Shown here: one piece after another, positions 14,437 to 54,819 of the stretch
Position numbering within the stretch: the stretch's first letter is position 1
Layout of the letters: each line of letters begins with the position of its first letter
Assembly: GCF_000002075.1 (NCBI RefSeq)
Contig: NW_004798155.1
Location: forward strand, 124,290 to 188,289
Source: Aplysia californica
Lineage: Eukaryota
DNA: 64,000 nucleotides
Direction of reading: 5' to 3'
Notes under the pieces: generated by a model
The model's input: only the letters and a program-made list of their open reading frames with translations
Told to the model about the DNA's origin: nothing
The model's database searches: none
Made by a program: the position numbers and the translations under genes

Positions 14437-14492
14437 ATGGATGCTGAGGAAGTTTATGTGTACAATCCTTTCCAAGGAATTGAGATTGGAAG
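14437..14492 (+). CDS. CENPC: CENP-C coding exon 1
   Basis: MDAEEVYVYNPFQGIEIGR; gtgag donor; upstream acceptor at 14408-14409. Confidence 0.82.
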
Positions 14493-15309
14493 GTGAGTCG
14501 ATCTATTCAGTTCATCTAGCTCAAACACAAACGTTTCTAGTGTACAACATTTATTTCACTGAGGACTGACTTTAGATAACTTGGGGATGGGGGCAGCTTT
14601 TAAGATTGATGATTTTGGGTCAAATAGTGGGTGGTACCTGGGTTGTTCATGTCTGAACCTGAAAGGAGCTTTGAGAATGTTTGAAGAACGCTTGATAATT
14701 TATCTTTCAAAACAGTCGGGTAGTGCAGAAACTATAATCAGTTATTAGCTATGATATGTGTAGTTTGGGGTTGGGTTGTTTTTTTCAAACCATTCTGACA
14801 GTAAATATTCATCTTGGTCGTATTTGATTTTATTTCTTTTTTCTCAAATGTTGTTATTATTTTAATACAGTGAGTAATACATGTGGAACAATTCTCTTAA
14901 GCTGCTGGTCCTCTATTCTTTTTAACTATTAAACTCCTTTTTTGAAGCTTCAGAATGCAACACGACATGTTAAATCTTAGTGTTAGTAAAAGTTCCTCCT
15001 TCTGCAACTTGTGAAATGTCTTTTGCATATTTCCCAGGAGAACGGGTATTTCAATTCACAAAGTCAAAAATGTGAAAAATGGCATGGACAACATAGATGA
15101 TTACTTCACAGACTCTGGTAATAATATAGAATTTTATTATTTTGTTAATAATAGTGTTTGTAGAGCCTTATTTAACTCCAGCGTATCATCAGTTTGCTGT
15201 GAATGTGTGTAACATGCTGAGTTTCTGTTCTCAAATGTTAATAATTGCTTTTTTTGTCCTAGTAATGAAACGGTGCTGCATTTAAGAGAATATCTCCTGC
15301 TGACCTCTT

Positions 15310-15364
<55 letters not shown>

Positions 15365-18300
15365 TTCTCTCTCTCTCAGTGTGGATTGGGTTATATAATT
15401 TTGTGTGGGAGCAAGTTCTGTTAACACAGAATGTTTCAAATGTAGACACTTAAAAGTTATACTGAAATCTTTTCCCATCAGTTATATTAAAGCTCTCTTT
15501 TAGTGTTCTGTCAAGTCTGTTTCTTTTTGTCATTAAAAAAATTTCAAGCAAAGAATATAGTGTGATGTTAAAGTTGAAATTTTTTTTTGAAATTTAGAGG
15601 GGTGGGGTTTCTTTTCCTTAAAAAAAAAAAAATCTAAGTTTGCTATTTTCTTTTGTAATTTTCAAGTTTGCGAGTATTTTCTTTTTATTATGCCAAGGTG
15701 GTATTATCAAAATAAGTATTTTAATATCCTTTGTCATTGCAATGTTTACATCTCTAATACTTATGATAACTTTTTTAATGAACTGTACCCACAACTTTAA
15801 AAAAAAAACTTCTGGAATCCCAGAGGCGGACCAGACTCTTGACGTGACCCAACAAGTGCCCCTGACCTCAGTGGAGAACACCAAAGTGTCGCCGCACAAA
15901 AATGTCAAGGATGTTGTCTTGGCGCCAGCTCAAACTGGAACTACCAAGCGAGGCGGTGCGGTCAAAAATGTTAAGCAGCCGACAACGGCAAGAAAAAGTG
16001 AAGGGGCACCGTCCAAGGTTTGTTTTGGTGCGGGCTTGCCAACTGTCCCGAATTTCCTCTGGGAATTTGAGAGAAGTTTTGTGTATAGTTGCGTAATCTG
16101 ATATGTCATGACACTGGGTATTCCTGGCTTGGTTTTCCAAAAGTTTGCAAGCCTTTGAATACTTTGATGCATGTTTTAGCGTTTGAGTAAAGAGAAGCAC
16201 ATTGCGGGGGGGGGGGGGGGGGGTTACTTTACGCTTACCCGCATCAAGATGCCAGTGATCATATTTTATTAGTGTATGTTTTAACAAACTTAGTTGAGGA
16301 GGGCTACTGAAAGGTCGTTCTTCTTCCCTGACCTGATGTAAATATCTGTCTTCCCCAAAGCCCTGTTATATTGCAATCATGTTAAAAAATAATCTTTAGC
16401 TTTTCAGCAGAAAAAAAGCAACCCTTTTTCTCCTGTGTTTTCCAGAGCCCAGCTATGGAGGTGCCAGTGAATCCTTTCGACTGGAATCCTAGAGTTGGAA
16501 GGTCAGTTGGGAACTATAGATTAGAGGCCTCTGGGTCTCTTATTGCCAGCATGACGTGGGTAGTAGAGCAGTTGTTCAGTAGTGCTGTACGGTACTCATT
16601 ATCTTTATTTTACAACTCGTGAGTGCTCGATGCCAAGCTTGCTACTACTTGAGTGCTCTCTGTTCAAGCCAAAGGATGCTACTAGCTGCTCTGTTTCCAC
16701 TCATCCCACCACCCCAACCCCATCTTCTACACTGCACTGCCGCAGAAAGGCACTCGACACACTGACGTAAATGTCAAAAAAAGAGGGGGGGGGGGTCCCG
16801 CTATGAAAGCGGCAGGCTTGCTCTGCAGAATTTCTCTCAAAGACAGGAGATGAAGACTGCTGAAAACACTGCGATGAAGCACTGATGGTGCGATGCTGCT
16901 CAAGCAGCTCTGTTTCAATCGATGACAATGCTATTTGAGCTAGGTGCCACTCACGAGTAACAAATACTTGAACGTGATATTTTGTTTGGTTGTTTTTTTT
17001 TCTTACCTATTTATAAATTTTGTCTGGGTTGTTGTTTTTTTCCATTATCCCTTCATAGTTTGTTTCATTTCCTTTTCTCAAGAATGCCAAGCAATGTTAG
17101 TGGCATCAAATTGGATGTGCCCTTGAGAAAAACACTGACCTTTGCTGGAAAACAGGCTCTTTTAGAAATTTGTTCCTATTTTTTTAAAAATTTGTTTGTT
17201 TCCTTTAGCATGAACAGAGTTTTTCTTTGCAGTATGAATGTGTATAGTTGGTGCCGTTAAAAAATTAATTGTCGAAAAGAAAAATATGTTGTGTTTATTT
17301 CTTGTTTTCTTTCTTTCCTTCGGTGTGTGCAGGAGAACAGGCCGAGATCTTCTGGCCGGCAAAAACGTCAGTAGGGTGGAAAACTTCAGCCAACTTCAAT
17401 CAGATAATGGTATGTTGAAACCAAACATTGTAGCAGCAATGTTACCTCACAACAGCAATGTTACTTCACAGCAGTAGAAAAGTTAATCATGCTCAGATTA
17501 ATTTCTCCTATAGATTCTAGATACAATGAGCTATTAACTTTGATGTATTTTTGGTATTTAGTTCGGTGGTCACTGGGGTGTGTCTGAGCAAAACACGATA
17601 AACCTTTTTCAAAAAACAGGGTGCTGCACATTGGCAACCAGCAGTGGCATGTTTGTAGTATTTCTGTATGTTTGAATATGTATACATGTATTTATGTACT
17701 GTCTTTATGTAGGTATGGTATATCATCATATGTTAAGCCATTGTAATTTAAAATGTCCCCACAGGTATCAATAAAAGAGGAATATTATATTCAAAAATTT
17801 ATTTTTAAGTTTTGTGAAAAATTTGTTTTAAAAAACTTAAGCAGATGGGTGACAGGTACAGACCAGGATAGCACAGGTTTTTTATGAGCATCTGAGCAGA
17901 GAAATGAGAGACGAACCAGCTGATTAAATTGAATCTGTATGAACTCCCCAACTATTAGATATCAGCAGTTTGTTTCCTCTCATTTGTTTCCAACCAGAGT
18001 CCACCATGTCCCCACAACTTACGCCCGAGACGTCGTCTATCAAGAATTCTTTGGTAAGTCTAGTGTGGGATCTAAGAGATCATCGCTTTCTACACAACAG
18101 CATATTAACTTTTTTCTACGGCCTTTTGTAATGATCCCAAAGCTCTTTCTGTGCCAGATTTTTTTTTTGAAGATTCGGTTTGTTTGATGCTCTTTGTATT
18201 TGCTTTGTTTTGTTTTATGACTGCTGTGTGTGTGGGTGGTTGTTGGGGGCTCTGTTGTTTCAGCTTCTTTTTTCCTATGAAACATCTATCGTCCTTATCT

Positions 18301-21300
18301 CTCCTTCTTTTCTTCGTATATTACTCTCCAGTAACACCCCTAATCTTCGGCACTTGTGTGACCTATTTGTGTTGCAAGTGCTGTAAAACTCTTACTAAAA
18401 ATCGAAACTACCTTAGTTGTTGTGAAAAGAAGTAAATTTTTGTTACATTTCTATACACCGTTTTTATTTTTTAAATGTATGCTATTAGATAGTCTTGAAA
18501 TGTTGGGGGGGGGGGGGGGGGGTGTCATTTAATACAAAAATATACTTTGGCTTTCAAGGACAACACAGTTCAAAATACATTCAACCATGGCCACATGGCC
18601 ACCTGTATAAGGCAATTACCTGTACAGACTCCCATTTACCTCCATTTTCCCAATTAAATGTTTTTTGGGTTTTTTTACATTGTAGTGACACTGTAAGACA
18701 ACCACTTGTTTAAAACGGCCACTTTTCTCCTCGACAGTGTGTGACCATCTCAGACAACTTTGACTGAGTTTATATTTCTCTATGTGTCGTAACTCCCCAG
18801 CGCTCTGGCTCACCTGGAGAAACAAATCAACCAAACGCGTCTACCCTGCACAATTCTGGTTCTGTCCATCATTCTGATAGTCTCTCAAGCAAAGTACACA
18901 GACGAATGGAAGAAAGGGCGAGCAGCAACTCTGGAAAAACATCCAGCGCAAAGAAAAAAGTCTTAGACTCGGGCAGTGGAGAGTTAGCGTCCAGTGGCTC
19001 TGACACTGAAACAAGAAAGGAAGTTAAAGCGACGACAGGAAGACGAAAATCAATGCGAAAGAATCATGCATTACCTGCATCTCATGACGACGAGGAAGGA
19101 AAAAGTAGTCCAGCCGATAGTCAGGAGGATAAAGATCAAGGTAGTCATGTGGACCGGCGAAGATCAGTGCGAAAGAATCAAGCATTGTCTGTATCTCATG
19201 ACGACGAGGAAGGAAAAAGTAGTGCCACTGATAGTCAAGAAGATACAGATCAAGGAAGTCATGTGGACAGAAGAAGATCAAGGCGAAAGAATCAAGCATT
19301 GTCTGTATCTCATGACGACGAGGAAGGAAAAAGTAGTGCCACTGATAGTCAAGGAGATACAGATCAAGGAAGTCATGTGGACAGAAAAAGATCAAGGCGA
19401 AAGAATCAAGTGTCGCCCGTCTCCCATGATGATCAAGGGGGGAAAAATAGTCCCCACGTTGATCAAGATCCAAATCAGGGTGGAGGTCATGGTGGAAAAC
19501 TCGACAGCTCCAGGAAACAGTCAAAAATCACAAATGATGTTGGTCAGAAGAGAACAGAACTCGACAAAAGGCCCCACAGTGAGCACCTTGGAACTGAGCA
19601 GACGGAGGATTTGAATTTATCTCGAAAGGGGACTTTGAGAAAAGGTTTGAAAAAGCTTCAAGAAAAAAGTCCCAGTGAGGAAAGAAAGACAGGTAGTTCC
19701 AGTGACAGCTCGGAGAAGCTGAGTAAATCGGCGAATGTTTCCCTCAAACAACTGAAAGAGTCAAGTGGCCGAGACAGTTCTGCATGCGGTGCAGATCCTC
19801 CTTTGGAACAGGCTGTAGCCGAGCTGAGTAAAAATTTGAATAAATCCCAAAACGAGGGTGTAAGAAAGAGCTTAAAGAAAGTGAAAATAATCGCTGCTGG
19901 TGACAATGTTGAGACAATTCTCCATCTTAGTCGCATCAAACCCAGTCCTCAGAAGAGGACTGGAAATAATTCTGACCGAGACGACGACACAGAGCACGGG
20001 GCAACAGCAAGCGCAGAAACAGAACCACCAGAGTCGAAGGATGGAAGTACATCCGGTGATTCTTCGACATTGTTTAAAAGGCCGCCGTCTTCAGGCGGGG
20101 AAGAATCTGAAGGATTGACCGAGAATGGTGGGAAGACAAAGTCATCAAGAGGTGCTTCCAAGGTACGGGGTTTGAATACAAGTTCAAAGGTGAACGTCTC
20201 TCTGAAGTCTAAGCCTTCTGCTGTAGGGGAGTCTGAGGTGGTGATGAAGCGAGAAAAGTCTGTGCAGTCAGCCTCCCAAAGTGGCAGAAAGACAGATGGA
20301 AGTGGAAAAGATCAGATGTCCAGTAGGGAAGATGGAAGCACAGCTGTGTCACAGGTAAACAAGTCTGAGAGATTTTGTTTGTCTGTTTTTGTGTATTTAT
20401 TATTTTGTGTGTTTGTGAGGGGTTGTTTATTAGTGGCAATTTTTTTGAAATCCTGATTGGATTGGCATAAAATCAATTCTTTTTAAAGATTGAATTCTAT
20501 TTTCATCAGTTGTACAGGACTATTTGTAAACGAACTGACAGTACACAGTTTTATTTGCAACATTTGTGTGACTTAATTTTAAATGACATCTCAGACGGGG
20601 CATTCTTGTACTCGGATCGTTTGTGGAGTTTTCAAAACTCTCAACCCATTTGGCTTGGTCCTGTCAGAGACGGGTGTTAAATTCAGAAGTCCCACCTCTT
20701 AGATAAATTAATAGTGTTGATTTGGGCATCAAACTCATACATTTATACACTCATTGCTGTCAGCCAGTACATACAAGTTATGTTTAATATGTTTTTGAGG
20801 ATCTGAGTACAGAATTGTGTGTTTTTGCAATGCTTTTTCTTTGTTTTATAGCATTGCTCTTCACAGATTCACCACTGGTCTTTCAATACCGAATTTGCTA
20901 ATAATAATGAAGCCCATTATAAGTCAATAGGGTTTGTGTCAATACATAACTGGAGATCTTTATTAAACATGTATCACTTCGTTTGCTGCTTTGAATAACT
21001 TGAATTTATTGATTGCAGAAAAGTGTGTTTGTGGAGGGTTTGGAATTTGGGCCACTTGGCCAATGCACGCCATCTTGGCCTGCCGCACAGGTAGAGTCGG
21101 TTTTGTGGTTTTGAAAAGTTGGCAGCTATCCGCTATTATGTAAATGACCATTATCGTGTTGACATGCTTCTCTGACCTCAAACATAAACTAGTAAGTGTG
21201 GGTGGATGGCAGGTGCTCTGGTGTGGTTTACTCCTTCTGCCCTATAAAAAGTCTATCGTCTCTGTCTCCCCTCCTTTTTTTTGTGTTTGTTACTTCCTTG

Positions 21301-24300
21301 TTACACCTTCGGCATTTATATGACCTTATTCTGTTGCAAGTGCCGTAAAACTCTTACTGAAACTAAACTAGTAAGTTTTGTTCCTTTCTGCTTTCTCTCC
21401 TCTGCAGGAGATCTCAGGTCTGGGTGGGAGTCTTTTGTCTCGTCCAGGCAGGAGTCTTTTGGACAAGTCTAAGGACACGACCACAACAGCCACGCTCAAC
21501 TTTGGCGGTGATGTGACCGGCTCTGTCACCAATGCCGAAAAGGCTTCTGCCAGTCACTTCTTTGGGATTAAAAAGAGGTATGCTGGAAGTATCATCATCA
21601 GCATTATCATCATCATCATCATTGTTGAAAAAGCAGAGTAGAAATCTTGATTGATTTTGAGTCAGGAAGTATAGGTAACAAAATTTTAAAATATTTATTA
21701 AAATGGCTCAACTTAGCAATGCTATCATCATCAACATCATCATCAAATACCAGACATCTTAAAGCTTGTTCGTTTGTCTTGCTTTCAATGAAAAATAATA
21801 ACCGGAATAGTGGGTGGTTGGCGGGTGCTCTGGTGTGGTTTGCTTCTTCTTTCCTATCAAACATCTATCGTCTTTATCTCTTTTTCTTTTTTATGTTTGT
21901 TACTCTCTTGTAACACCTCTAATCTTCTGGTGCTCATATGACCTTATGCAGTTGCGAGCGCCGTAAAACCTCTACTAAAACAATATCTTGAATAGAAGTC
22001 CTGATATTTTATTTAGTGCTGAAGGAGGTGCAGGTTGCCTGGTTTCAGAGGTGAAAGGTAGCAAGAAAATGGCCACCAAAGTTTAGTGATTTTCAAAGCT
22101 CAAGTGTCCTTGGAAATTGCAAATTAAAATTTTTTAAACTTTTGATCGACGTCTTTAACCACCCAGTTTCTTTCGATTTTCCCCAAAATGTCTTTGCCTT
22201 TGATGGCGAGGGTTTTTACTATAATAATATAGTGTAAAGGGCATAGAGCTTGCTGTCGAGTGGGGTTATGCGCTATACAAATGCTATTTATTATTATTAT
22301 TATTATTACTATATGAGCCTTGTGATGGCAAAGTGTTCAGTAAAATCCTCACAGAAATGTGTTGTTAAATAGGTATAAAAGATGTTGAGCCTAAAAAAGG
22401 AAATTCGAAGAAAAAATGTCCACTGGCCAGAAAAATGCCTGGTCTTTTTATAAATTCATTATTTTGACAAGCGCTGGATTTCACCACGATGACTCATATT
22501 TATATTTATTTTTTTATGTATGGCATTGATGTTTGACCACAATATGGATGTCTTTCTCAGGCTGTCATACTCTGTCGCTATAGCAGACGCCAGTAAAAAC
22601 AAGACAGACAGATCACAGAATGACATAGAGAAAAAGAAATCTGCCATCCCAGTCAGGTAAGTATTTAGAATGTTCTCAGTTTTTATTTGTTCTAGTACAA
22701 TCAGTTTTCCACTAAAGGAACAATATTTAATTAGCACGAATAAAAATATTTTTGTCCTCATTGAATTAAATTCATAAAATGATTTTTTCTATCTGTCTGT
22801 CTTCCTGATCCAGTTTCCTCAATGAGCCTCTGTGTTACTGTCTTCTCACATGAAACAAGTCTGGGGCCAGCTGATCGGATGTACTCAAATAAACATTTTG
22901 ACATTTTAATTTTCTGTTTCTTTATATGTGGTATCGGTTGCATGTGCTCAAGAAATATTTTGTTAAAATCTATATTCTAATTGTCGAAAGACTCAGAAAA
23001 AAATTCATAATATAGGTATAATTGTCAAGAGAATTAACTAGCTTGGTTTTTTTCCCCCCTCTCCTGTAAAATTTTTCTTTGGACATAAAGGAATGACTCC
23101 ACGCTGCAGTCAGTTATAGTTACTGAGATTTCCTTTGTTTCCAGACTTTAGGGACAACCTATGCATTCATCTAGTCTATCACATTTGTACAGGCCTCTTT
23201 CGTGTAGTGGTCAGGCGCTTAGCTGTCGCACGCAGGAGACCTGAGTTCAATTGCCGTGTAAAGAGAGTTTTATTGAGTATCTTGGTCTTTCTGCTGGGAT
23301 GTTGTATCCCTCTCAGCCCGGGTTAGCCCTGACCGGCAGGGTCAGAAGCCCGCCTCATAAATGGGGTAAATTGTGTCAATTGAGGAAGGGGGGGGGGGGG
23401 GGGGGTAAAGCACCATTTTATTTTTTACTTTAAGACTTGAGATACATCCTGTATATTCCAGAATTCTTTAACTTTTGTCCTTCCAACCCCAACAGGACCA
23501 GGGCCAATCTGTCCCAGAGCCAGCAAGACAAAACTCTCCTGTCTACCTTCGAGAGTTTCACCTTTGTTGACGTGGGAGGTCAAGACAACTTTGTCATTGT
23601 CGAGGCTGGTGATGAAGAAGAAAGAAATGACGCTACAGAAAGGTCAAAGACGAAAGAGACGAGGAAACGTAAATCCTCGTCAAATACGCTGGATCAAGGG
23701 GCGTCTTCACCATCTCCTCCAAAGTTGAGCAAGACAGATCTTTTGGCTTTGGGCTACAGCGCAGAGAAAATCGCAACCCTGGCAGCAGACGAGGAATCTG
23801 CCAAGGGCAAGAGGAAAGGAAAAGGAAAGGCTGTTCAAACTAGAAGTGCTGCCAAGAATGATGGACAGAAAGAGAAAGATATGGTGGTAATCAGTGCCGG
23901 CCAGGACTCCGAAAGTGTGCGGTCCGAGCCAAACACGGACATATCACCCAAAAGGTCTGGCGGGAGAGCAAAACTGAAAGATAAGAAACCGTCACAAACC
24001 AAGCCGTCACAGACTGACAGGAAATCCTCAGAAAGCAGTGATGAATCTGCGGAACTTCCTGCTGATCTGGACACGAGAAAAAAGGCAACTAAAAGATCAA
24101 GCAGAAAAAGGAAACAAGAAGCTGAAGAAAATGTGCCTTCTACTCGTGCTGCTTCAAAGCGAGAGAAAGACAGTCGTGAAGTATCTGAGGTCACGTTATC
24201 GTCGTCTAAGATGTTGACTCTCTCGCGGACGGTCACGTCAAAAGACATCAGTTCTAGAGGGAGAGTGAGAAAAAAAGCAGCATCCAAAGAATATCCATTT

Positions 24301-27300
24301 TCTAAAACTTCTGGACCATCAAAGGAGGAAGAGACAGATGATGAAATTATTCTTGGTGGTTTCAAAAAGGGCTCTGGGTTGGAAAAAGAAAATTCTATCA
24401 AGAGGAAAAGGGTTCAAAGTCAGCCCAAGTTAACAAGAGCAGTTTCTAAAAGCAAAAAGGTTAGGCAGTCAAAACGAAGACAAGCTGCCCCTTTGAATAA
24501 GCAGCTGAGAAAACGAAAGAGGAATGTGGACGCCAACACTTCTGCAGGTCCTGAAGAGCAAGAGTGTCTTCAAACAAATGTCGCAGGCGAAATTTCGGAG
24601 GTGTGTGAGGAAGCTGAAGTCAGTTTAGCAGAGGACGAGAAATCCCCGGTCAAACCTCCACAGTCAGACACCAAGTCTTGTGACCCCCCAGCTGAGGTGC
24701 AAGATGAAGAAAAAGTACCAGGAAATCCAACGACAGGTTCCCGCACGAGAACCAAATCTTCTACAACAAAAGAAGTAGAGGGTAGTCGCACTAAAGCAAA
24801 ACCTTCGACAAAGGAGTTGGGAGGTCGTAGCGCCAAAACAAAATCGTCTTCGACAAAGGAATTGGAGAGTAGTTGCAGCAGAAGCAAATCTTGTACAAAA
24901 AAAGAGTTGGAGAGACAAGTGGGAACCTCTGGTCCCAGAAGATCCCTTGCTGCAGTTTTGGAGGACAGTGTTTCTGCTTCTGATGATGGAGACAAAGAGA
25001 AGGAAGTGGAGGAGGAAAATGCTCAGGACCTCGCAGGCGAAGGCGCTGAGTCGACCGAAGGGGAAGCAGAGCGCCTGCTGGGAGTGTCCGAAACCAAACC
25101 CGAGAAGTCGAAGAGACTTTCAACGTCAAAAAGAGGGAAGAAAGAGAAAGAAGTTACAGACCAGCCCAGAAAGAGTTTGTCTCGGAAACCTCGACATTCA
25201 CAGAAACATGGTGAGGTTTCTCACAGATTTTTTCTTCCCTCAGCTTTTTCTGTTTCAGACACAGTCAGTGGGTGGTTGGCAGGTTCTCTGGTGTGGTTTG
25301 CTCCTTCTTTCCTATAAAATATTAATCATCCTAATCTCTCTTCCTTCTTTTCTTTGCGTGCTCTAGTAACACCTCTAGTGTTTGACGCTTATCTGACCTA
25401 TTTGTGTTGCGAATGCTGTAAAACTTTTTCTAATACTAAAATCACTGTTTTAATCAGTCGTTGGTGTACACCTGTCTCTGTTTTCAGCAGTGTCTATGTT
25501 CATCTACTAAAACGTGTAAGATCATAATTTGTTATAATATTGTTTAAATCGGTTTACAGACTTGTGTATTTGGGTTTTTTTATTCGTATCAGTTTTTGTT
25601 TTCTTCTTCTGCACCTGGCGTGCAGTGCAGGAGGCTAGAGGGCGCCACTAATAGACTAATAGATCCTACCTCTTTTCTTCCCTTCTGTTGTTTCTGTCCA
25701 TGTTGTATTTTTCCTTGGACTGAGAGGGTTCTATTGACTCAGTGAGTCAACGTAGGTAGTTCAGTGAAAATGTCAATGTGCTTGTTCTCTTTACTCAAAC
25801 TCAAACAATGTTTAGTGAACCCAGGTTGTGGGTGGTTGGTGGGTGCTCTGGTGTGGTTTACTTCTTCTTTGCTTTCAAACATCTATAGTCATGATCTCCC
25901 CCTCCTTCTTTTTTGTGTTTGTTACTCTCTTGTAACACCTCTAATCTTCGGCACTTATATGGCCTTATTGATTGTGTTGCAAGTGCCGTAAAACACTTAC
26001 TAAACGGGTGCTCATATGACCTTATGCAGTTGCGATCACTGTAAGACTCTTACTAAAACAAACAAACACTTACTAAAACAAAAAGAACCAAGGATAAGAT
26101 TCAATTGAAATGTTTAGTTCCAGCTTCAGCGACGCCGCAGCGAGTGAACTTGTTGCTGTCATTGCCCTCGGTGACCCCACAGAGCGGTCCGTCTTTCCGG
26201 CTGTCGCGCAGATTTTCCCCGCAGTTGTCCTCGCCGGATCTGGATTCCTCCCCGGAAAGTCCGAGTCCTCGAGGTGAGTTTATAATACGGGTGGTTGGTG
26301 GCTGCTCTGGTGTGGCTTGCTCCTTCTTTCCTGTCAAACATCTATCGTCCTTTTCTCTCTTCCTTTTTTTATGTTTGTTACTCTCTTGTAACACCTCTAA
26401 TCTTCAGCACTCACATGACCTTATTGTGTAACACATTTTGTTGTTGTTGTTGAAATGGTTAAATCTGATATCATATTCAAATTCGTGGTTAAATTTTGAG
26501 AAATTACAAAAATAGACCTGCTGTGCGACCTCAATGTGCTGAAACAAAGAAGGCACACAACAAACACAATGTGGAATGAATTTGATGATCCCAGTCGGCT
26601 ACCATTTGTTAAATGGATGGATGGATGCGGATTTTTTATCTGAATGCGCCTCTACAGCACCAGGCTATTATAATTATCCCTCACTTCCCTGTGGCCCAGG
26701 TAATACTGGAGTCCTTGACTCCTCAGGCTCGGCCAACACTGAATGTGTCTGTAATTTTTGGCTGACATTAAACCATAACTTCCAACCAGTAAGTAAAGAA
26801 CATGCAGATGCTGAAGGACAATTATGACCTTTCAAGAACAGACTTGAGAATTATATTGAGAACGAAGCTCTTGAGTCAATTGGAGAGGTCTTTTACTTTT
26901 ACCGCAGTTCCACTTTGAATTGCTTGAATTTACTGAATGTAGAAAAGTGTGTTGAGGGTTTGAAGGAAGAGGAGGGGGGGGGGGGGGGGTCAACTGGCCA
27001 ATGCCCACCATCTTGACCCACCTTAAGGGAGGAATCTGTGTTTTGGTCTTGTAAAGTTGTCATCTACGCCTTGTACTTTTCCAGTGGAGACTCCAGGCCC
27101 CCTGGCCAGGAACACAAAGATGGCTATTCCGGCAGTGGACGCCACCCCCCAGGCCCCTGCCTCGTGTCTGCGTGGGAACAACCCACACAAGAGATCGCTG
27201 AAGGGGAGGAAAGTGCGCATCAGCAACATCATCGACCGACTGGAGGTCTCCCAGAATGAAAGCAATNNNNNNNNNNNNNNNNNNNNNNNNNNNNNNNNNN

Positions 27301-30300
27301 NNNNNNNNNNNNNNNNNNNNNNNNNNNNNNNNNNNNNNNNNNNNNNNNNNNNNNNNNNNNNNNNNNNNNNNNNNNNNNNNNNNNNNNNNNNNNNNNNNNN
27401 NNNNNNNNNNNNNNNNNNNNNNNNNNNNNNNNNNNNNNNNNNNNNNNNNNNCCCTCTTCCTCAGATCGGCTTCTTATTCTTGTGTTTTTTGGGTTTTTTT
27501 GTTTTGTTTGTTTTTTTGAGGGGGGATACATTATAACGACTAATGACACTGTAAAATTTCCACCTATCTAAGACAACTTCTTTACCCCTCAACAATGAAT
27601 GACCATCGTAACAATCTCAACTATATGTAATTTTTCATGACATTCCTCATGTTCTGTTCTCCAGGCGAGCTTTCTTCCGATGGACGGAGCTCCACGATGT
27701 TGCCCTCACCAACGTCCTCCCCGGTCCACTACGCCGAGACCACCCACCACTACCCCAGCCCGAAAGACTTCCTTGTACCAGACCTCTCGAACAAAATCAG
27801 TAAGACTTAACTCTTTGTCGTCATCATCATCGTCGTCATCACCATCACAGACCAAAAAACTCCTGTTTTTCTTGAAGCATTACAATTTGTACCATGTTGG
27901 CACGATTTTACATAACTTACAAATATCAGCACCAAAATCAGGACTCAGGACCAATAACTCATCACAGCCAAGGTTCTTTAGCTCTTATCAGCCAGAATTT
28001 ATGTCATAGATTTACCTGAACAGCCAGAATTCGATTTCTGGCCATTATCACTATTTGTTAATTACAAGGAGTAATTCATTTTGTCCGCACGCCTCATATT
28101 TAATTTGGTCGGTTCCTTTTTACATTTACTTGTTTTGTTGCTTTTTTAGCTTGTGTCAAATGTTTAAACCCATACCCTGCTGTACCAGCATCTGTGGTGT
28201 AGTGGTTAGACACTTTGTCATAGTGCAAAGATCTAAGTTCCATTCCTGGAAGGGGAGAATTTTTATTGAGTTTCTCAGTCTTTCTCCTGGGACATTGTAT
28301 CCCTCTCAGCCCAAGTTGGCCTTGACAGGCAGAGTGTTGATGGGGACATAAAATCACCTACATTTAAAAAAAAAATTTATTTTGATTTTGGATACTGCCA
28401 TAGTATCACTGTGGGTACTGAGAGAATGCTCACATACACAGGGGTTGGGAGAGAGTTATCCTGAAGGTTCTTGGTGTCACTTCTTTACTCACTGAGACAA
28501 TGAGCACCTGTTCCCACACTGGCACCGCTGAAAGCATAGTAGTTTTGTTTTTTCTTTTTTCACTTTCAAACAAATGTGTAGAAGCTCCAAATAATGATTT
28601 GTGTTCCTTATTATCTAAATAAACATGAACCAAAAAAACCACGACTCTAATGGCAACCAATACTTTTTTACTGTGATGATGAAATGAAGACATGATACAA
28701 GATCTGTGGGTGGTTGGCGGGTGCTCTGGTGTGGTTTGCTTCTTCTTTCCTATGAAACATCTATTGTCCTTATCTCCCCTTCTTCTTTTTAGTGTTCGTT
28801 ACTCTCTTGTAACACCTCTAATCTTCTGGCGCTCATATTACCTTATGCTGTTGCGAGCGCCGTAAAACTTCTACTAAAACAGACAAATACAAGATCTTTT
28901 CTTTTTTTTCTGTCTTTCTTTTCTTTCTTTCATTTTTCTTGTGATTGGAGGATGCCCCTGGTTGATACTACTTCCTTAACTTTTTTTTTTCTCTCATTTC
29001 TCTTGTGGTTGAAGGATGCCTCTGGTTCATCCTGCTCCTTTTATTTTCTTTCTGTTATTTCTATCCGCCTGTCTTGCTCTTTGTCAAGGCTAAATGGCTG
29101 TTATTGTGTCAATGTGCTGCTCTTTAAATACACAAAATTTACTCAAAAGTGTTCACATTTCATAATCAGAGCCAGGAAATAATTTTCTTTTTTTTTTTTT
29201 TTTTTTTTTTCAAATCTTCTTTTCAGTTCGACCTGGCAGCGAAAATGATGACGGACTTCGTCGGTCTCATAGAACGAGAGTGAGGCGCCTCAGCGCTCAC
29301 AAGGGGGAGGGAATAATCTACAGGCGAGACAGTACAGGTAAATCCAGTGTTATTAGTCGTAGGGAAGTGTTTGAGAAATGTTTGCAGGCTTGCCAACTGT
29401 CCTGAATTTCCGGGGACTGTTCCGGATTTGGCAATCAAAAATTTGAGAGGACATTGTATACACTTAGCCAAAACTAGTCCCATAGGATGTAAATTCGTTT
29501 TTTTGTTGCGCTGTCTGATGTTATAATGTTAGGGGTCACTAACTGGGGTTTTGTTAAAGTTGGCAGGCCTGAGGCCTGCGTTTATGTTATATTTAATAGA
29601 GCTCTTGTTAAGGGAATTCACAGGGGTGCGTCCTCGAGCAAGACACAATAATCCTTGCACAGGAACAGGCGGCTGTACAGCGGCGTCCACCAATTGCGTG
29701 TTTGTAAAATGACGATGTAGGTTGGATATTGTGGGTTATGTAGCTTAGAGGAAGAAATATTGTGTGCAAGTATCCAAATTTCTCACGCGGATAAATATGT
29801 GGTATTTATTTATTTATTATCTTTATTAATTATTTAGTTAGTTTTTTTTGTCCTCAAGTTATCAAGAAAAGTAGTATTGTTTATTTTATTATCTTTATTG
29901 ATTTTTTTTCTACACATGTTCTCTGCTCAACAGGATTTGGAATGATGGTGGCCGGCATCCAGCCCTCCGTGGTGGAAGCGAAGGAGAGAGCCAGAGAAGA
30001 CAAGCGTAGGAAGCAGATCAAACAGCGAAAAAGTAAGTGGTGGTTTTGTCTTCTTGGTGGAAATTCGGCTTGATAACTCATCTTCTCCACCTTCTGTGGT
30101 GTAGCCTTGGAGCTTCGTCATCACTTACAGAAGACATGGGTTTGATTCCTGAGTGGCGAGGGGTTGTTGTTGGGGTTTTTTGGGGGGGTGTTTGGAGTTT
30201 CTCTGTTTGTCTGCTGGGACGCTGTATCCCTCTCAGCTTGGTTTGGCCCTGATAGGCAGAGCTGTTAAAGTACTTTTTAAAAAGTACTTAAGTGCAAATT

Positions 30301-31331
30301 TTAAGTACAATCTAAAAAATGTACTTAAGTACAGTAAAAGTACTTTCTTGTAAAATGTACTTGAGTACAAGTACTTTTTAAAAAAGTACTTATGAGTACA
30401 TTTTGAGTACTTTCTGCTAATATGCTAAAACTCATCAGCGCTTATGCAAAACATCATATTAAATAACATATCCAGTATATTTGACCAATTAGGCTATTTA
30501 TTACTAAACATGTAAACAGTATACAAAGCATTTGAATATACAATGTACACACTGAACGAAGGTGGAAATGGTTCGTGAAATTGAAAAACCCCCAAAACAA
30601 ATAGACGCAACTAGTGGGTAAGTGATATATATTATGAATAGAACTTGTTTGAGCAAGACAATGTGATCAAATGTAAGTCAGTCCAAGAGGTCGGAAAGTT
30701 CTACAGAAAAAGTATCCAAATTAGAAAATGTAGATACTAAGCTGCTCTTAAGAAAACATAAAATTAATGAAAATGGCCAGCATAGAAATGGAAAAGTGCA
30801 TTGAATTCTTCATGAACAAATCCTCAAGGAATCAATGTAGCCTTACGCAAAAACCACCCAAAAAAGGTTTTAAAGAAATTTAGGCAGCCTAAAAAATTGT
30901 TAGATACACATTGAGAACACAGTTTCAGTTTCAATTGATTACAGTGGTAAGATAGATTTTGGTCACACTGTATAGTCCACGACGCCCACGGCAAACCAAA
31001 ATACAAAGATTCTCTACTACAGTAGTCTCCGCCTAAGATCCCAGTACTCGGGAGCAAGAAAAATATGGGATCTCAGCCGACGAAGCCAAGGAAGAATCTA
31101 CAGTGACCCATGAACTGACGTGACCCCTGGGTGGATTTATGACATATGGCGAGCAAAGAGTGGTCAACCTTGATGACCAATCACAGTGGCATGAGGCATG
31201 CCATAAATAATTTATATACACACTTATTAGCCTATCGTGAGTCTTGAGATCTTTATCTACGTTTATCCAGTTGCTCCTCCCCTTCACCTGTCCAACAATT
31301 TTAGCTTTCCATCTCTGATTGAGTCATCCTC

Positions 31332-31384
<53 letters not shown>

Positions 31385-34300
31385 CCGCCTTTACTTTGTT
31401 GTTACGCACCATTACGTTGTGGCAACACCAATTAAAGTTCAGGCTGTCTCGCAAATTCGGGAATAGAGAAAAACTGCTTTCAATGGTCAGGGAAGAGTTC
31501 CTTACCCACCCAGCGAGTGATGTAAGTTTAGGTGGTGAGCTCAGATGCGAGTGCGATGTTTGGGGAAAAGAAACGCATCGGTCAGTTCACACCTTGGTGT
31601 GATCCTGTCTGGAGCAAACACTGTACCGTTTCATGGAGTTTTACAACGCTTGTGATCACATTCACGATAGTGGCTGATCTTTGGCGCGACGGGCCGTTCT
31701 TTGATCTCAACTTTTAACTCTTGGTTGATCGGCTGTGCCCCCCCGGGTGTTTGTTCCGTAAATTATGACCAGAAATGCCGGCACATACCCTTTCATTAAG
31801 CTTCAAAAGTACTCAAAATGTACTTTAAAAATACTCAAAAGTACTTTTATGAAAAGTATCGGAGTACAGTAAAAGTACTGGTTTCCAAAATGTACCGGAG
31901 TACAGTAAAAGTACCGAAAATTGTAATGTAAGTACAAGTACCGGAGTACTTGTACTCCGTTACAACCAGCTCTGCTGATAGGCACGGTCAAAGCAGCCCA
32001 CCTCCTAAATGGTCTTAATAATGTCGATGGGGGCGTAAAAACATCTGCAGTTACATTTTTACAGCAGGTTGATAGCTTGTCTTCTTTGTGAAAACTGAGG
32101 CTGATAACTGCGTCAGAAGTTGAGAATTTAGTTGGGGGTTTTTTCGTGTGTTTTTTTTTACTTCACAGTTGAAAGTTATTTCATTTTGTTTTTCAAGTCT
32201 ATCATGTGTCTCTGGTTTCTAACATAAAAGGCTTGGATTAAAATGTAGTTTTAACAGTGAAGTAAGTACATGTTTGGCAAGAAACACATAGAAAGATTTC
32301 TGGATTTGAAGAGAATTTTTTGTGGGTGGTTGGCGGGTGCTCTGGTGCGGTTTGCTCCTTCTTTCCTATCAAACATCTATCGTCCTGACCTCTCCTACTT
32401 CTTTATTGTGTATGTTACTCTCTTGTAACTCCTCTAATCTTCTGCGCTTAATATGACCTCATTGTGTTGCAAGTGCCGTAAAACTCATACCAAACCTAAA
32501 CTTAGAATATTTTTTCCATCCACAGTGAAGGCCCTAAGTGTTCCTGCCCATGGGCCAAAGAAACGTCTGTCGTGCCACTACAAGACAGACAAAGATGTGA
32601 CCTTGACCACCGAGGTCGCCGTGCTGGACCCGGACACTGAAGAGCAGAAGATGATGGGTAGGTATTTATCACAGGATGCTGGCTTACCAATTGACGGTGT
32701 TTGTGGTGTAGCGGTTAGGTGCTTTGCTATTGCATGCAGGAGACCCGAGATCGATTCCCGCGTGGGGAGAAATTTTGATTGAGTATCTTGGTTTATCTGC
32801 TGGGATGTTGTATCCCTCTTAGCCTGGGTTGGCCCTGACAGGTAGAGTTGGAAGCCAGCCTCATAAATGATCTAAATTATGTCGATGAGGGTGTAAAAAA
32901 CACCATTAACTCTTATCCTGCGTCTGTGCCCAGATGCATATCTTATCAGCAACTGATTACGTTGGACGTGCCGGGCAGGCCGCCGGGGTCACTCAGTGTG
33001 TACTGTTGGTGTACAGCGCGCGCGCCGGGAAACGTGTGTTTTCGCCATGAATACCGCGGGAGTGTGTTAACCGATGATGAAAATAACGCTCTATCCTTCA
33101 TAGCTTTCTATTTATAAAGTGTTACAAACATGTGAATAACCCCTTCTCACAAGCTGATAAGACATTACGAGTAGTTACGCCCATTCAAATAACCTTTCTG
33201 GACGCTCTTGTTGTTATGAATGACCTGAGGTTCGAAAGGGGATAATTTAGGTCAATTTCCTAATGTTTTACACTCAAATTGTTCTTTGTACCTGCACAAT
33301 GGTATTCAAAACTATCAAACAAGCTTATTTTTTATCAGGTAGTATCATTTCATACAAAATCAAGCTCATTTGAAATATTTTGTATAGAAAAATGGAAGTC
33401 TTGTTTCCTGACTATCCTTTCGAGCTCCTCATGTCTAAGTGGGTCAATTTCTTCTATAATTTCATTGGACAAACATCTAGAGCTACCAACTTGGCATCTT
33501 TTGAATGAGACGTATGCCTCGATTACGAACCCAGGCAGGCGGTTCTAGAAGAAGGCCACAAACGCACACAAACTCAAGCAGACTGACGCACACACACTTG
33601 ACCTGCGTGAATGGGGATCCGACTCGGGACCCGAATGACACGTATGAGGATGCGCGTGCGCTGAGCCAGGAGCTACACTGACTCGGGACCAGAACGTACG
33701 CGAGGTGCCGAAATAGGCTTTTCGGGCTACATAAACCCGGCTTCCGCATGATGAGGGTTGAAAAAAATTATTTTTTTAATGAATAAAATCATCAGAAACC
33801 GGAACAGGTGACAAGAAAATCTCTTTTAGGTCCTTGTTTCTTGGCAGATTTTGCCCACACTAATTTGCTCTTATGAAAATAGTTGAGGCCATGGGATAAA
33901 ACCATGTGTAAACAGAAAAAAAAGTGCCAAACCGTGGATGGAAAATATTGTAATAGCTTCCCTAGCATGGTTTAGAAATAATTTGTAGCATTAAAAACTA
34001 GTAATAGACAATATGTGAATCTGACATACTTCGTCAATCTGAAATCTGCAACTGGACACTACTTTTAGCGTTCGCAGTGGGTGGTTAGTGGGTACTCCGG
34101 TGTGGTTTGTTCCTTCTTTCCTATCAAACATCTATCGTCCATATTTGTTCTTCTTTTTTGTGTTTGTTGTTTGCTTGTAAAACCTCTAATCTTCAGCACT
34201 CATATGATATTATTGTGTTGCAAGTGCCTTAAAAATCTCACAAAAACATAGAACAATCTAATATTTGGCACTCGTATGACCTACTTGTTGCAAATGCTAT

Positions 34301-49017: not shown

Positions 49018-54819
<5,802 letters not shown>

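Follow-up and report, generated by a model that had tools for sequence, protein, structure and literature searches.

The Pro and the two aromatic residues of the CENP-C motif are used by other organisms to recognize CENP-A, and the aromatic pair, which binds the hydrophobic C-terminal tail of CENP-A, is treated as a conserved means of telling CENP-A nucleosomes from H3 nucleosomes. In vertebrate CENP-C and KNL2, mutation of this pair abolishes nucleosome binding or centromere function. The canonical motif has been described in human CENP-C (residues 736-758), in rat and chicken CENP-C, and in yeast Mif2 (Kato et al. 2013, PMC3865007; PDB 7xhn chain C), and the first of three contacts that published structures define for CENP-C and CENP-C-like motifs places conserved arginines in the acidic patch of H2A/H2B (PMC3865007, PMC5371998, PMC10015371). 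Another contact is seen in the chicken proteins CENP-C and KNL2, in which residues lying downstream of the motif touch the L1 "RG" loop of CENP-A (PMC10015371). At the motif position of putative shark CENP-C there are no tryptophans, and the teleost proteins agree with the motif in part (Kral 2016, PMC4830207). Here we describe the CENP-C gene found within a 64,000-nucleotide stretch of the Aplysia californica genome (contig NW_004798155.1, positions 124,290 to 188,289 of the forward strand, referred to as the window herein), in which the arginines of the motif are kept while the Pro and both aromatic residues have been replaced.

Translation of the forward strand at 29253-29321 yielded GLRRSHRTRVRRLSAHKGEGIIY, and the reverse strand of this interval contained nothing of note. 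The initial annotation, made from the sequence alone, had placed a CENP-C motif at this site, and the assignment held: the interval lies in exon 14 of 19, with the annotated 22-residue string starting at 29256. When the full-length protein was compared with PDB sequences by phmmer, residues 1508-1556 aligned to residues 726-771 of human CENP-C (7xhn_C), the motif was aligned without gaps, and Aplysia LRRSHRTRVRRLSAHKGEGIIY stood opposite human VRRTKRTRLKPLEYWRGERIDY; the E value of 0.69 for this alignment alone is backed by the downstream cupin and by orthology. The alignment reproduced the gapless match and all four substitutions that had been reported at the outset, namely Pro to Arg, Tyr to Ala, Trp to His, and Arg to Gly (GER to GEG), as well as the retention of the arginine anchor, the Leu, the GE, and the final Tyr. 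Both flanks also matched the human protein, with NKIIRPG opposite HKLVLPS upstream and GFGMMVAGI opposite G-GFVISGV downstream. Upon inspection against the canonical pattern R...P..[YFW]W, the Aplysia motif failed at the Pro, which is Arg, and at the pair, which is Ala-His. What it shares with canonical motifs is its site just upstream of the cupin, the RR[ST]xRTR anchor, a Leu following the Pro position, the GE and final Tyr, the G-hydrophobic-G segment downstream, the gapless alignment, and a predicted docking on the acidic patch. Immediately before the motif, the stretch LPDLSHKI(V/I).P matches human HKLVLPS; the residues directly before the anchor are NTPN (Thr-Pro) in human, acidic SENDDG in Aplysia, and Ser-Pro in Physella and Bulinus.

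The gene itself was identified with a 572-aa neighboring exon (exon 10), which we used as the query in an exhaustive HMMER search and which retrieved a 1747-aa database protein at 99% identity (XP_012944614.1, P0001 in our set). The source name of this protein, [quoted passage not shown] (SRRM2), is wrong because the protein bears the Mif2/CENP-C cupin PF11699. As the initial annotation had stated, the cupin lies downstream of the motif, and its score of 38.8 bits lies above the cut-off of 29 (E 1.1e-9, residues 1655-1731). PF11699 exceeded the cut-off in six of the six mollusc proteins that we compared, the five orthologs scoring 38-55 bits, and the orthologs from Biomphalaria and Physella carry the NCBI source names "centromere protein C(-like)". 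The Aplysia protein therefore has the features of the CENP-C family in the cupin, the orthology to annotated CENP-C, and a basic motif with an RR[ST]xR anchor upstream, the anchor (residues 1522-1528) lying ∼130 residues ahead of the cupin. Exact splice chains rebuilt the protein for exons 1-11 and 13-19, the reading frame was open through 19 of 19 exons, and a polypyrimidine tract precedes the acceptor AG of the motif exon. This gene is the true single-copy CENP-C of Aplysia californica, and its public name is wrong. Other public names also mislead: a second Aplysia entry (P0008) is listed as "axoneme-associated protein mst101(2) isoform X2" and the Mya protein (P0004) as "telomere-associated protein RIF1-like". 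The CENP-C cupin and motif are found in P0001, P0008, and P0004 alike.

To place the variant motif within molluscs, we carried out two word searches limited to the C-terminal region, which yielded five orthologs and, together with Aplysia, a sample of six mollusc species (alignment A1). The motifs in this alignment are RRSHRTRVRRLSAHKGEGIIY in Aplysia californica (P0001), RRSRRTRVKRLASHKGEGIIY in Physella acuta (P0007), RRSKRTRVMRLNCDRGEGIIY in Bulinus truncatus (P0003), and RRSKRTRVLRLNRDRGEGIIY in both Biomphalaria glabrata and B. pfeifferi (P0006 and P0005), all heterobranchs, and RRSKRTRLRPIAWYKNERVVV in the bivalve Mya arenaria (P0004). Over the C-terminal ∼350 residues, the Aplysia protein is 40-45% identical to those of Physella, Bulinus, and Biomphalaria. 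The Pro is Arg in each of these snails, and in place of the Ala-His of Aplysia, Physella has Ser-His, Bulinus Cys-Asp, and the two Biomphalaria species Arg-Asp. The motif core accordingly reads RL-SAH, RL-ASH, RL-NCD, and RL-NRD (the last twice) in heterobranchs, whereas it reads RP-IAWY in Mya and KP-LEYW at the equivalent position of the human protein in the phmmer alignment. Mya CENP-C (1752 aa) shares 29% identity over the last ∼350 residues, the anchor (GLRRSKRTR), the cupin, and the same architecture with the Aplysia protein but differs in having kept the Pro and the aromatic pair (RPIAWY). Because Mya retains these residues, we take the ancestral mollusc motif to have been canonical.

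The variant motif appears to be an old, fixed, lineage-wide trait in at least Aplysia, Physella, Bulinus, and the two Biomphalaria species, and not the oddity of one species as which it was first described. On this distribution, the loss of the Pro and the aromatic residues would predate the split between sea hares and freshwater pulmonates, which is deep. The initial annotation had judged a single sequencing error improbable, and the same loss in four other snail species rules out an error of sequencing or annotation in Aplysia. Full-text literature searches turned up no publication dealing with CENP-C in Aplysia, in Biomphalaria, or in gastropods as a whole, and none that describes this substitution.

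Conservation within the motif is uneven. All six mollusc sequences share RRS.RTR without change, the five heterobranchs have GEGIIYRRDS in identical form, and among heterobranchs the replacement Arg, the following Leu, and GEGIIYRRDS.G as a whole are invariant or nearly so. The two former aromatic positions, on the other hand, vary in the same species (A/S/C/R and H/H/D/D). This pattern suggests that constraint at these two positions is relaxed, and that the rest of the motif, that is, the RRSxRTR anchor and ∼25 downstream residues (GEGIIYRRDS.G...GIQP), remains under strong constraint. Compared with the known contacts, the snail motif has kept the arginines and lost the residues of the tail contact, and its downstream segment, which includes an Asp, is exceptionally conserved.

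We modeled residues 1505-1565 of the Aplysia protein in complex with H2A and H2B of the same animal, whose sequences come from a histone cluster. The complex scored an ipSAE of 0.65 (0.62-0.69 over three runs), as compared to 0.00 for the best of three controls; among solved complexes, 51 of 78 attained the mark used for this score, as did 2 of 108 mismatched pairs. Agreement between the runs was at least 43% of contacts, with a partner pLDDT of at least 40. The confident interface consists of LRRSHRTRVRR (1521-1531) on residues 60-61, 64, 88-92, and 94 of H2A and residues 41, 44-47, and 102-106 of H2B, which together constitute the acidic patch. Generic arginine-anchor binders of the acidic patch (PMC5371998) resemble the snail motif in being basic peptides that insert arginines into the patch and do not read the histone variant, but the snail motif differs from them in sitting in a CENP-C ortholog beside a conserved segment and a dimerizing cupin. 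It also differs from chicken KNL2's CENP-C-like motif (PMC10015371; PDB 7BY0) in being without the equivalent of the F535/W536 aromatic pair.

Taken together, these results make it likely that Aplysia has a single-copy CENP-C with a lineage-wide variant motif in which docking on the acidic patch is retained, reading of the CENP-A tail is lost, and specificity comes from elsewhere. We favor this reading because the anchor and its flank are strongly constrained while the aromatic positions vary. In the mechanism that we infer, the arginines of the variant motif would still dock on the H2A/H2B acidic patch as in the model, the motif would no longer read the CENP-A tail, and discrimination between CENP-A and H3 would be supplied by the conserved downstream segment or by other parts of the kinetochore. 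As such, this group of snails probably recognizes its centromeres differently. The initial annotation had listed a CENP-C that binds nucleosomes without reading the tail among several possibilities; the conserved anchor, the variable aromatic positions, and the docking model fit this one best, though they fall short of proof.

Several points weigh against this reading. The model score may reflect memory of solved arginine-anchor complexes and denotes likeness rather than affinity, and peptides and disordered partners lie outside the calibration of the model. The proposal that the downstream segment touches the L1 loop of CENP-A is drawn by analogy with the chicken proteins and is hypothetical. 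The Aplysia sequence itself comes from one assembly, although it is backed by conservation in other species, and the sampling covers one heterobranch subclade (Aplysiida and Hygrophila) and one bivalve, which does not fix the timing of the loss or its wider spread in gastropods. Lastly, the low sensitivity of our genome searches could let a highly divergent paralog, or a KNL2 with a CENP-C-like motif, escape.

The alternative that survives best is co-evolution of the CENP-A tail with the motif, or a new contact in place of the old one. This is compatible with retained docking and lost tail reading and does not exclude it, and we regard it as possible, if on the improbable side. CENP-A is present in molluscs (PMC12210499), and our histone-family search of the genome returned, besides H3.3-like exons and canonical H3, H2A, and H2B, a single CENP-A-like exon, located on scaffold C1131. 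On that scaffold, the first CENP-A-like exon encodes a divergent N-tail, and the second, which is followed by a 1321-N gap, encodes an L1 loop that is four residues longer than that of H3. The sole divergent H3-like C-terminal exon of the assembly, on scaffold C488, ends in TPKDITVARQLKGLK-stop (ARQLKGLK-stop), so that Leu-Lys, two residues, follows the Gly. In human CENP-A the tail after this Gly is LEEGLG (six residues) and in H3 it is ERA (three residues) (PMC5371998). Set against this, the C488 exon lies on another scaffold and its join to the C1131 exons is unverified, and the candidate tail begins with Leu, hence it is still more hydrophobic than the H3 tail. The candidate CENP-A is thereby split over two scaffolds, probably through misplacement during scaffolding, and we found no overlap between the C1131 and C488 flanks. 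If the C488 exon belongs to the same gene, the short candidate tail is suggestive of CENP-A/CENP-C co-evolution. The co-evolved tail proposed in the initial annotation thus finds tentative support in the Gly-Leu-Lys end and is held back by the location of that exon on a scaffold different from that of the other CENP-A-like exons. A fuller scenario, which we put forward tentatively, is that loss of the Pro and the aromatic clamp preceded the divergence of Aplysia from the freshwater pulmonates, that CENP-A underwent a parallel shortening of its tail to two residues, and that specificity now comes from GEGIIYRRDS.G reading the enlarged L1 loop or from another CCAN (constitutive centromere-associated network) route.

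Other H3-like sequences were observed nearer to the window. On the window's own scaffold, ∼70-95 kb upstream, a histone cluster (C885:30821-36369 and 53044-53421) contains canonical H3 and at least four tandem copies of an H3-like open reading frame (ORF). This ORF is intact and encodes 146 aa, with a rewritten alpha-1 (RYPSFETRKLSFKH), a short alpha-2 insertion (QKSCVMVLYEAY), and Cys substitutions. ORFs of this 146-aa type, free of stops, recur at C2:1904358, C2100:15143, and C695:63659, and could represent a variant H3 family or repeats carried by mobile elements.

A less probable alternative, and one that we consider unlikely, is that tail reading has moved to a second aromatic motif in the central region, to the four RRRSxRKN repeats, or to a separate KNL2/M18BP1. 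The nearest precedent is found in the fish of Kral 2016, where the putative CENP-C of shark and teleosts has an RxxxxPxxWW elsewhere in the protein and fish M18BP1 bears the motif (PMC4830207). Unlike these fish proteins, the five heterobranch proteins contain no such second motif. Loose motif patterns found no canonical motif in any of the five, while the same patterns did pick up the Mya motif, and of the 2-4 Trp residues in each heterobranch CENP-C none stands in a basic, Pro, or motif-like context. When the window was scanned in six frames with the regular expressions R....P..[YWF][WFY] and R.{8}[YWF]W, neither matched within an exon of the CENP-C gene, in agreement with the earlier remark that the visible exons held no second R...YW motif. 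As queries against the 927-Mb genome, translated in six frames, the motif exon, two cupin exons, and the canonical motif of Mya likewise returned this gene only, so that the second CENP-C whose absence the initial annotation had wanted checked did not appear in these exon-by-exon searches, which are of low sensitivity. The motif exon found only itself, and the sole match to the Mya motif (51 aa) was the window's own motif exon, with an E value of 0.99 that reflects a short query of low sensitivity. Family searches are insensitive on split exons: the PF11699 profile missed even the CENP-C gene in its own genome, and the best match for CENP-N (PF05238), which bears on the rewired inner kinetochore that the initial annotation had also proposed, had an E value of 1.33 and carries no weight in either direction. 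Two further cupin-exon matches, C596:377739 (E 0.24) and C316:392160 (E 9, with an internal stop), were short and low-scoring and were not counted as paralogs.

Within the gene, two elements were considered as sites to which tail reading could have moved, and neither found support. The "YPF" element of exon 10, SRGRVRKKAASKEYPFSK (24253-24312), is the sole basic-plus-aromatic stretch in the central region and resembles RRSGRVKVSAQPVQYPFFK of Physella, but it is absent from Bulinus, Biomphalaria, and Mya, and in a shuffle test the likeness did not exceed chance (it was not the best local alignment, and the best alignment reached z = 1.7). The units of the tandem array in exon 7 are 87-91% identical, each encoding GSHVDR[RK]RSxRKNQ..S.SHDDEEGKSS, and their RRRSxRKN segments could not be shown to be extra motif copies, being without aromatic residues and not conserved in other snails. 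The RRRSxR core of these units is similar both to the beginning of the CENP-C motif and to kinase consensus sites. Their copy number differs between isoforms: isoform X2 is short by exactly one 38-aa unit, its sole difference, and keeps the variant motif, as does an older model of the protein (P0009) that differs solely by an N-terminal extension.

A motif might also hide in the N gap at 27267-27451, which the initial annotation had singled out. The database protein has one residue (Glu 1465) and one base that are absent from the assembly at the edge of exon 12, and the donor site of exon 12 therefore lies just inside this gap. Because so little of the protein lies beyond the assembly and the protein is collinear, residue for residue, with those of four snails across the gap, a hidden exon appears unlikely, and all isoforms retain the variant motif.

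Slightly less probable still is that the motif binds no nucleosome at all, with the basic stretch kept as a nuclear localization signal, for DNA binding, or for docking of a kinase or phosphatase, and with recruitment left to the CCAN and cupin dimerization. RRSHRTRVRR is indeed a generic basic cluster, and the human CENP-C motif does not by itself suffice for targeting to the kinetochore (PMC5371998). However, the RRS.RTR spacing is invariant from bivalve to snail, is near the human RRTKRTR, and exceeds what a nuclear localization signal needs; the adjacent segment, which is not basic, is equally conserved; and the modeled complex puts the anchor on the acidic patch, as compared to scores of 0.00 for three controls. 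Finally, an artefact, whether an error of sequencing or assembly, a wrong exon or frame, a pseudogene, or a real motif lost in an N gap, is effectively refuted: the draft assembly does have gaps, including one within the gene beside exon 12, but four independently assembled and annotated snail genomes share the loss (Physella even the His), the frame is intact in 19 exons of a single-copy gene whose cupin is above the cut-off, and the protein is collinear with its relatives across the gap.

The features of the locus, along with the two candidate CENP-A loci, are collected in Table 1.

Table 1. Coordinates of the CENP-C gene, its variant motif, and candidate CENP-A exons. Positions refer to the window unless a scaffold is named.
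Feature	Position	Strand	Basis or remark
CENP-C gene, 19 exons	14437..36697	+	tblastn of P0001 on the window, every exon 100% identical
Tandem array in exon 7, unit of 114 bp (38 aa) in 3.2-3.6 copies	19041..19454	+	TRF, regular expression
Exon 12, runs straight into N gap 27267-27451	27085..27266	+	P0001 mapping
Exon 14, motif exon, P0001 residues ∼1511-1548	29227..29337	+	AG at 29225-29226, GT at 29338-29339
Variant CENP-C motif LRRSHRTRVRRLSAHKGEGIIY	29256..29321	+	Translation, gapless human alignment, alignment A1 with five mollusc orthologs
Basic arginine anchor RRSHRTRVRRL, residues 1522-1532	29259..29291	+	Invariant A1 columns; complex model interface
cgc, Arg at the canonical Pro position	29286..29288	+	Arg in five heterobranchs; human and Mya have Pro
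gct cac, Ala-His at the aromatic-pair positions (Ala 29295-29297, His 29298-29300)	29295..29300	+	Human Tyr-Trp, Mya Trp-Tyr
Start of conserved downstream segment KGEGIIYRRDST(G), continuing in exon 15	29301..29337	+	GEGIIYRRDS identical in five heterobranchs
Exon 15, rest of conserved downstream segment (GFGMMVAGIQPS...), then basic linker	29934..30032	+	Aligns to human GGFVISGV
Exon 16, linker and start of C-terminal domain	32526..32657	+	P0001 mapping
Exon 17, first cupin exon, includes GELQLGPLAEK	34373..34545	+	Sole genome match is itself
Exon 18, cupin	36022..36112	+	PF11699 and P0001 mapping
Exon 19, cupin end and stop codon	36591..36697	+	P0001 mapping
Candidate CENP-A N-tail/alpha-N/alpha-1 exon and long-L1 exon	C1131:138896-139511	-	Histone-family search
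Sole divergent H3-like C-terminal exon in the assembly	C488:39025-39138	-	In a 4.6-kb piece bounded by N gaps

Conserved stretches were also seen elsewhere in the protein. Two N-terminal modules, each consisting of NPF...(I/V/Y)GRRTG with an acidic (D/E)(Y/F) patch after it, are kept in all six mollusc CENP-Cs, including that of Mya; in Aplysia the NPF...GRRTG modules lie within exons 1-5 (14437-17409). The blocks KGRKV(R/K)IS and SPVHYAE(T/I)T, encoded by exons 12-13 (27085-27266 and 27664-27799), lie upstream of the motif at a distance of 50-90 residues; the five snails conserve them, and in Mya they are still recognizable (TPQHICETT). Many introns contain a short interspersed repeat in both orientations, for example at 25260-25320, 32290-32430, 34060-34180, 36850-36990, and 37510-37590; at least some copies look tRNA-derived, and in ORF listings the repeat appears as ...GWLAGALVWFAPSFLSNIY... 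and, on the other strand, as ...FDRKEGANHTRAPANHP....

The protein thus belongs to the CENP-C family, and its motif variant probably works as an acidic-patch anchor, as the docking model suggests. The significance of this is tempered by a mechanism that is inferred, by the fast evolution for which centromere proteins are known, and by the partial precedent in fish. In practical terms, the Aplysia and Mya proteins now named SRRM2, mst101(2), and RIF1-like can be re-annotated as CENP-C. A clade that lacks the aromatic pair while its anchor and flank are tightly constrained constitutes a natural experiment that parts acidic-patch docking from tail reading, makes the downstream segment a candidate specificity element, and offers a concrete test case for CENP-A/CENP-C co-evolution. 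If the parallel loss of the clamp and shrinkage of the tail are true, this clade would be a natural "aromatic-less" mutant of a contact deemed essential in vertebrates.

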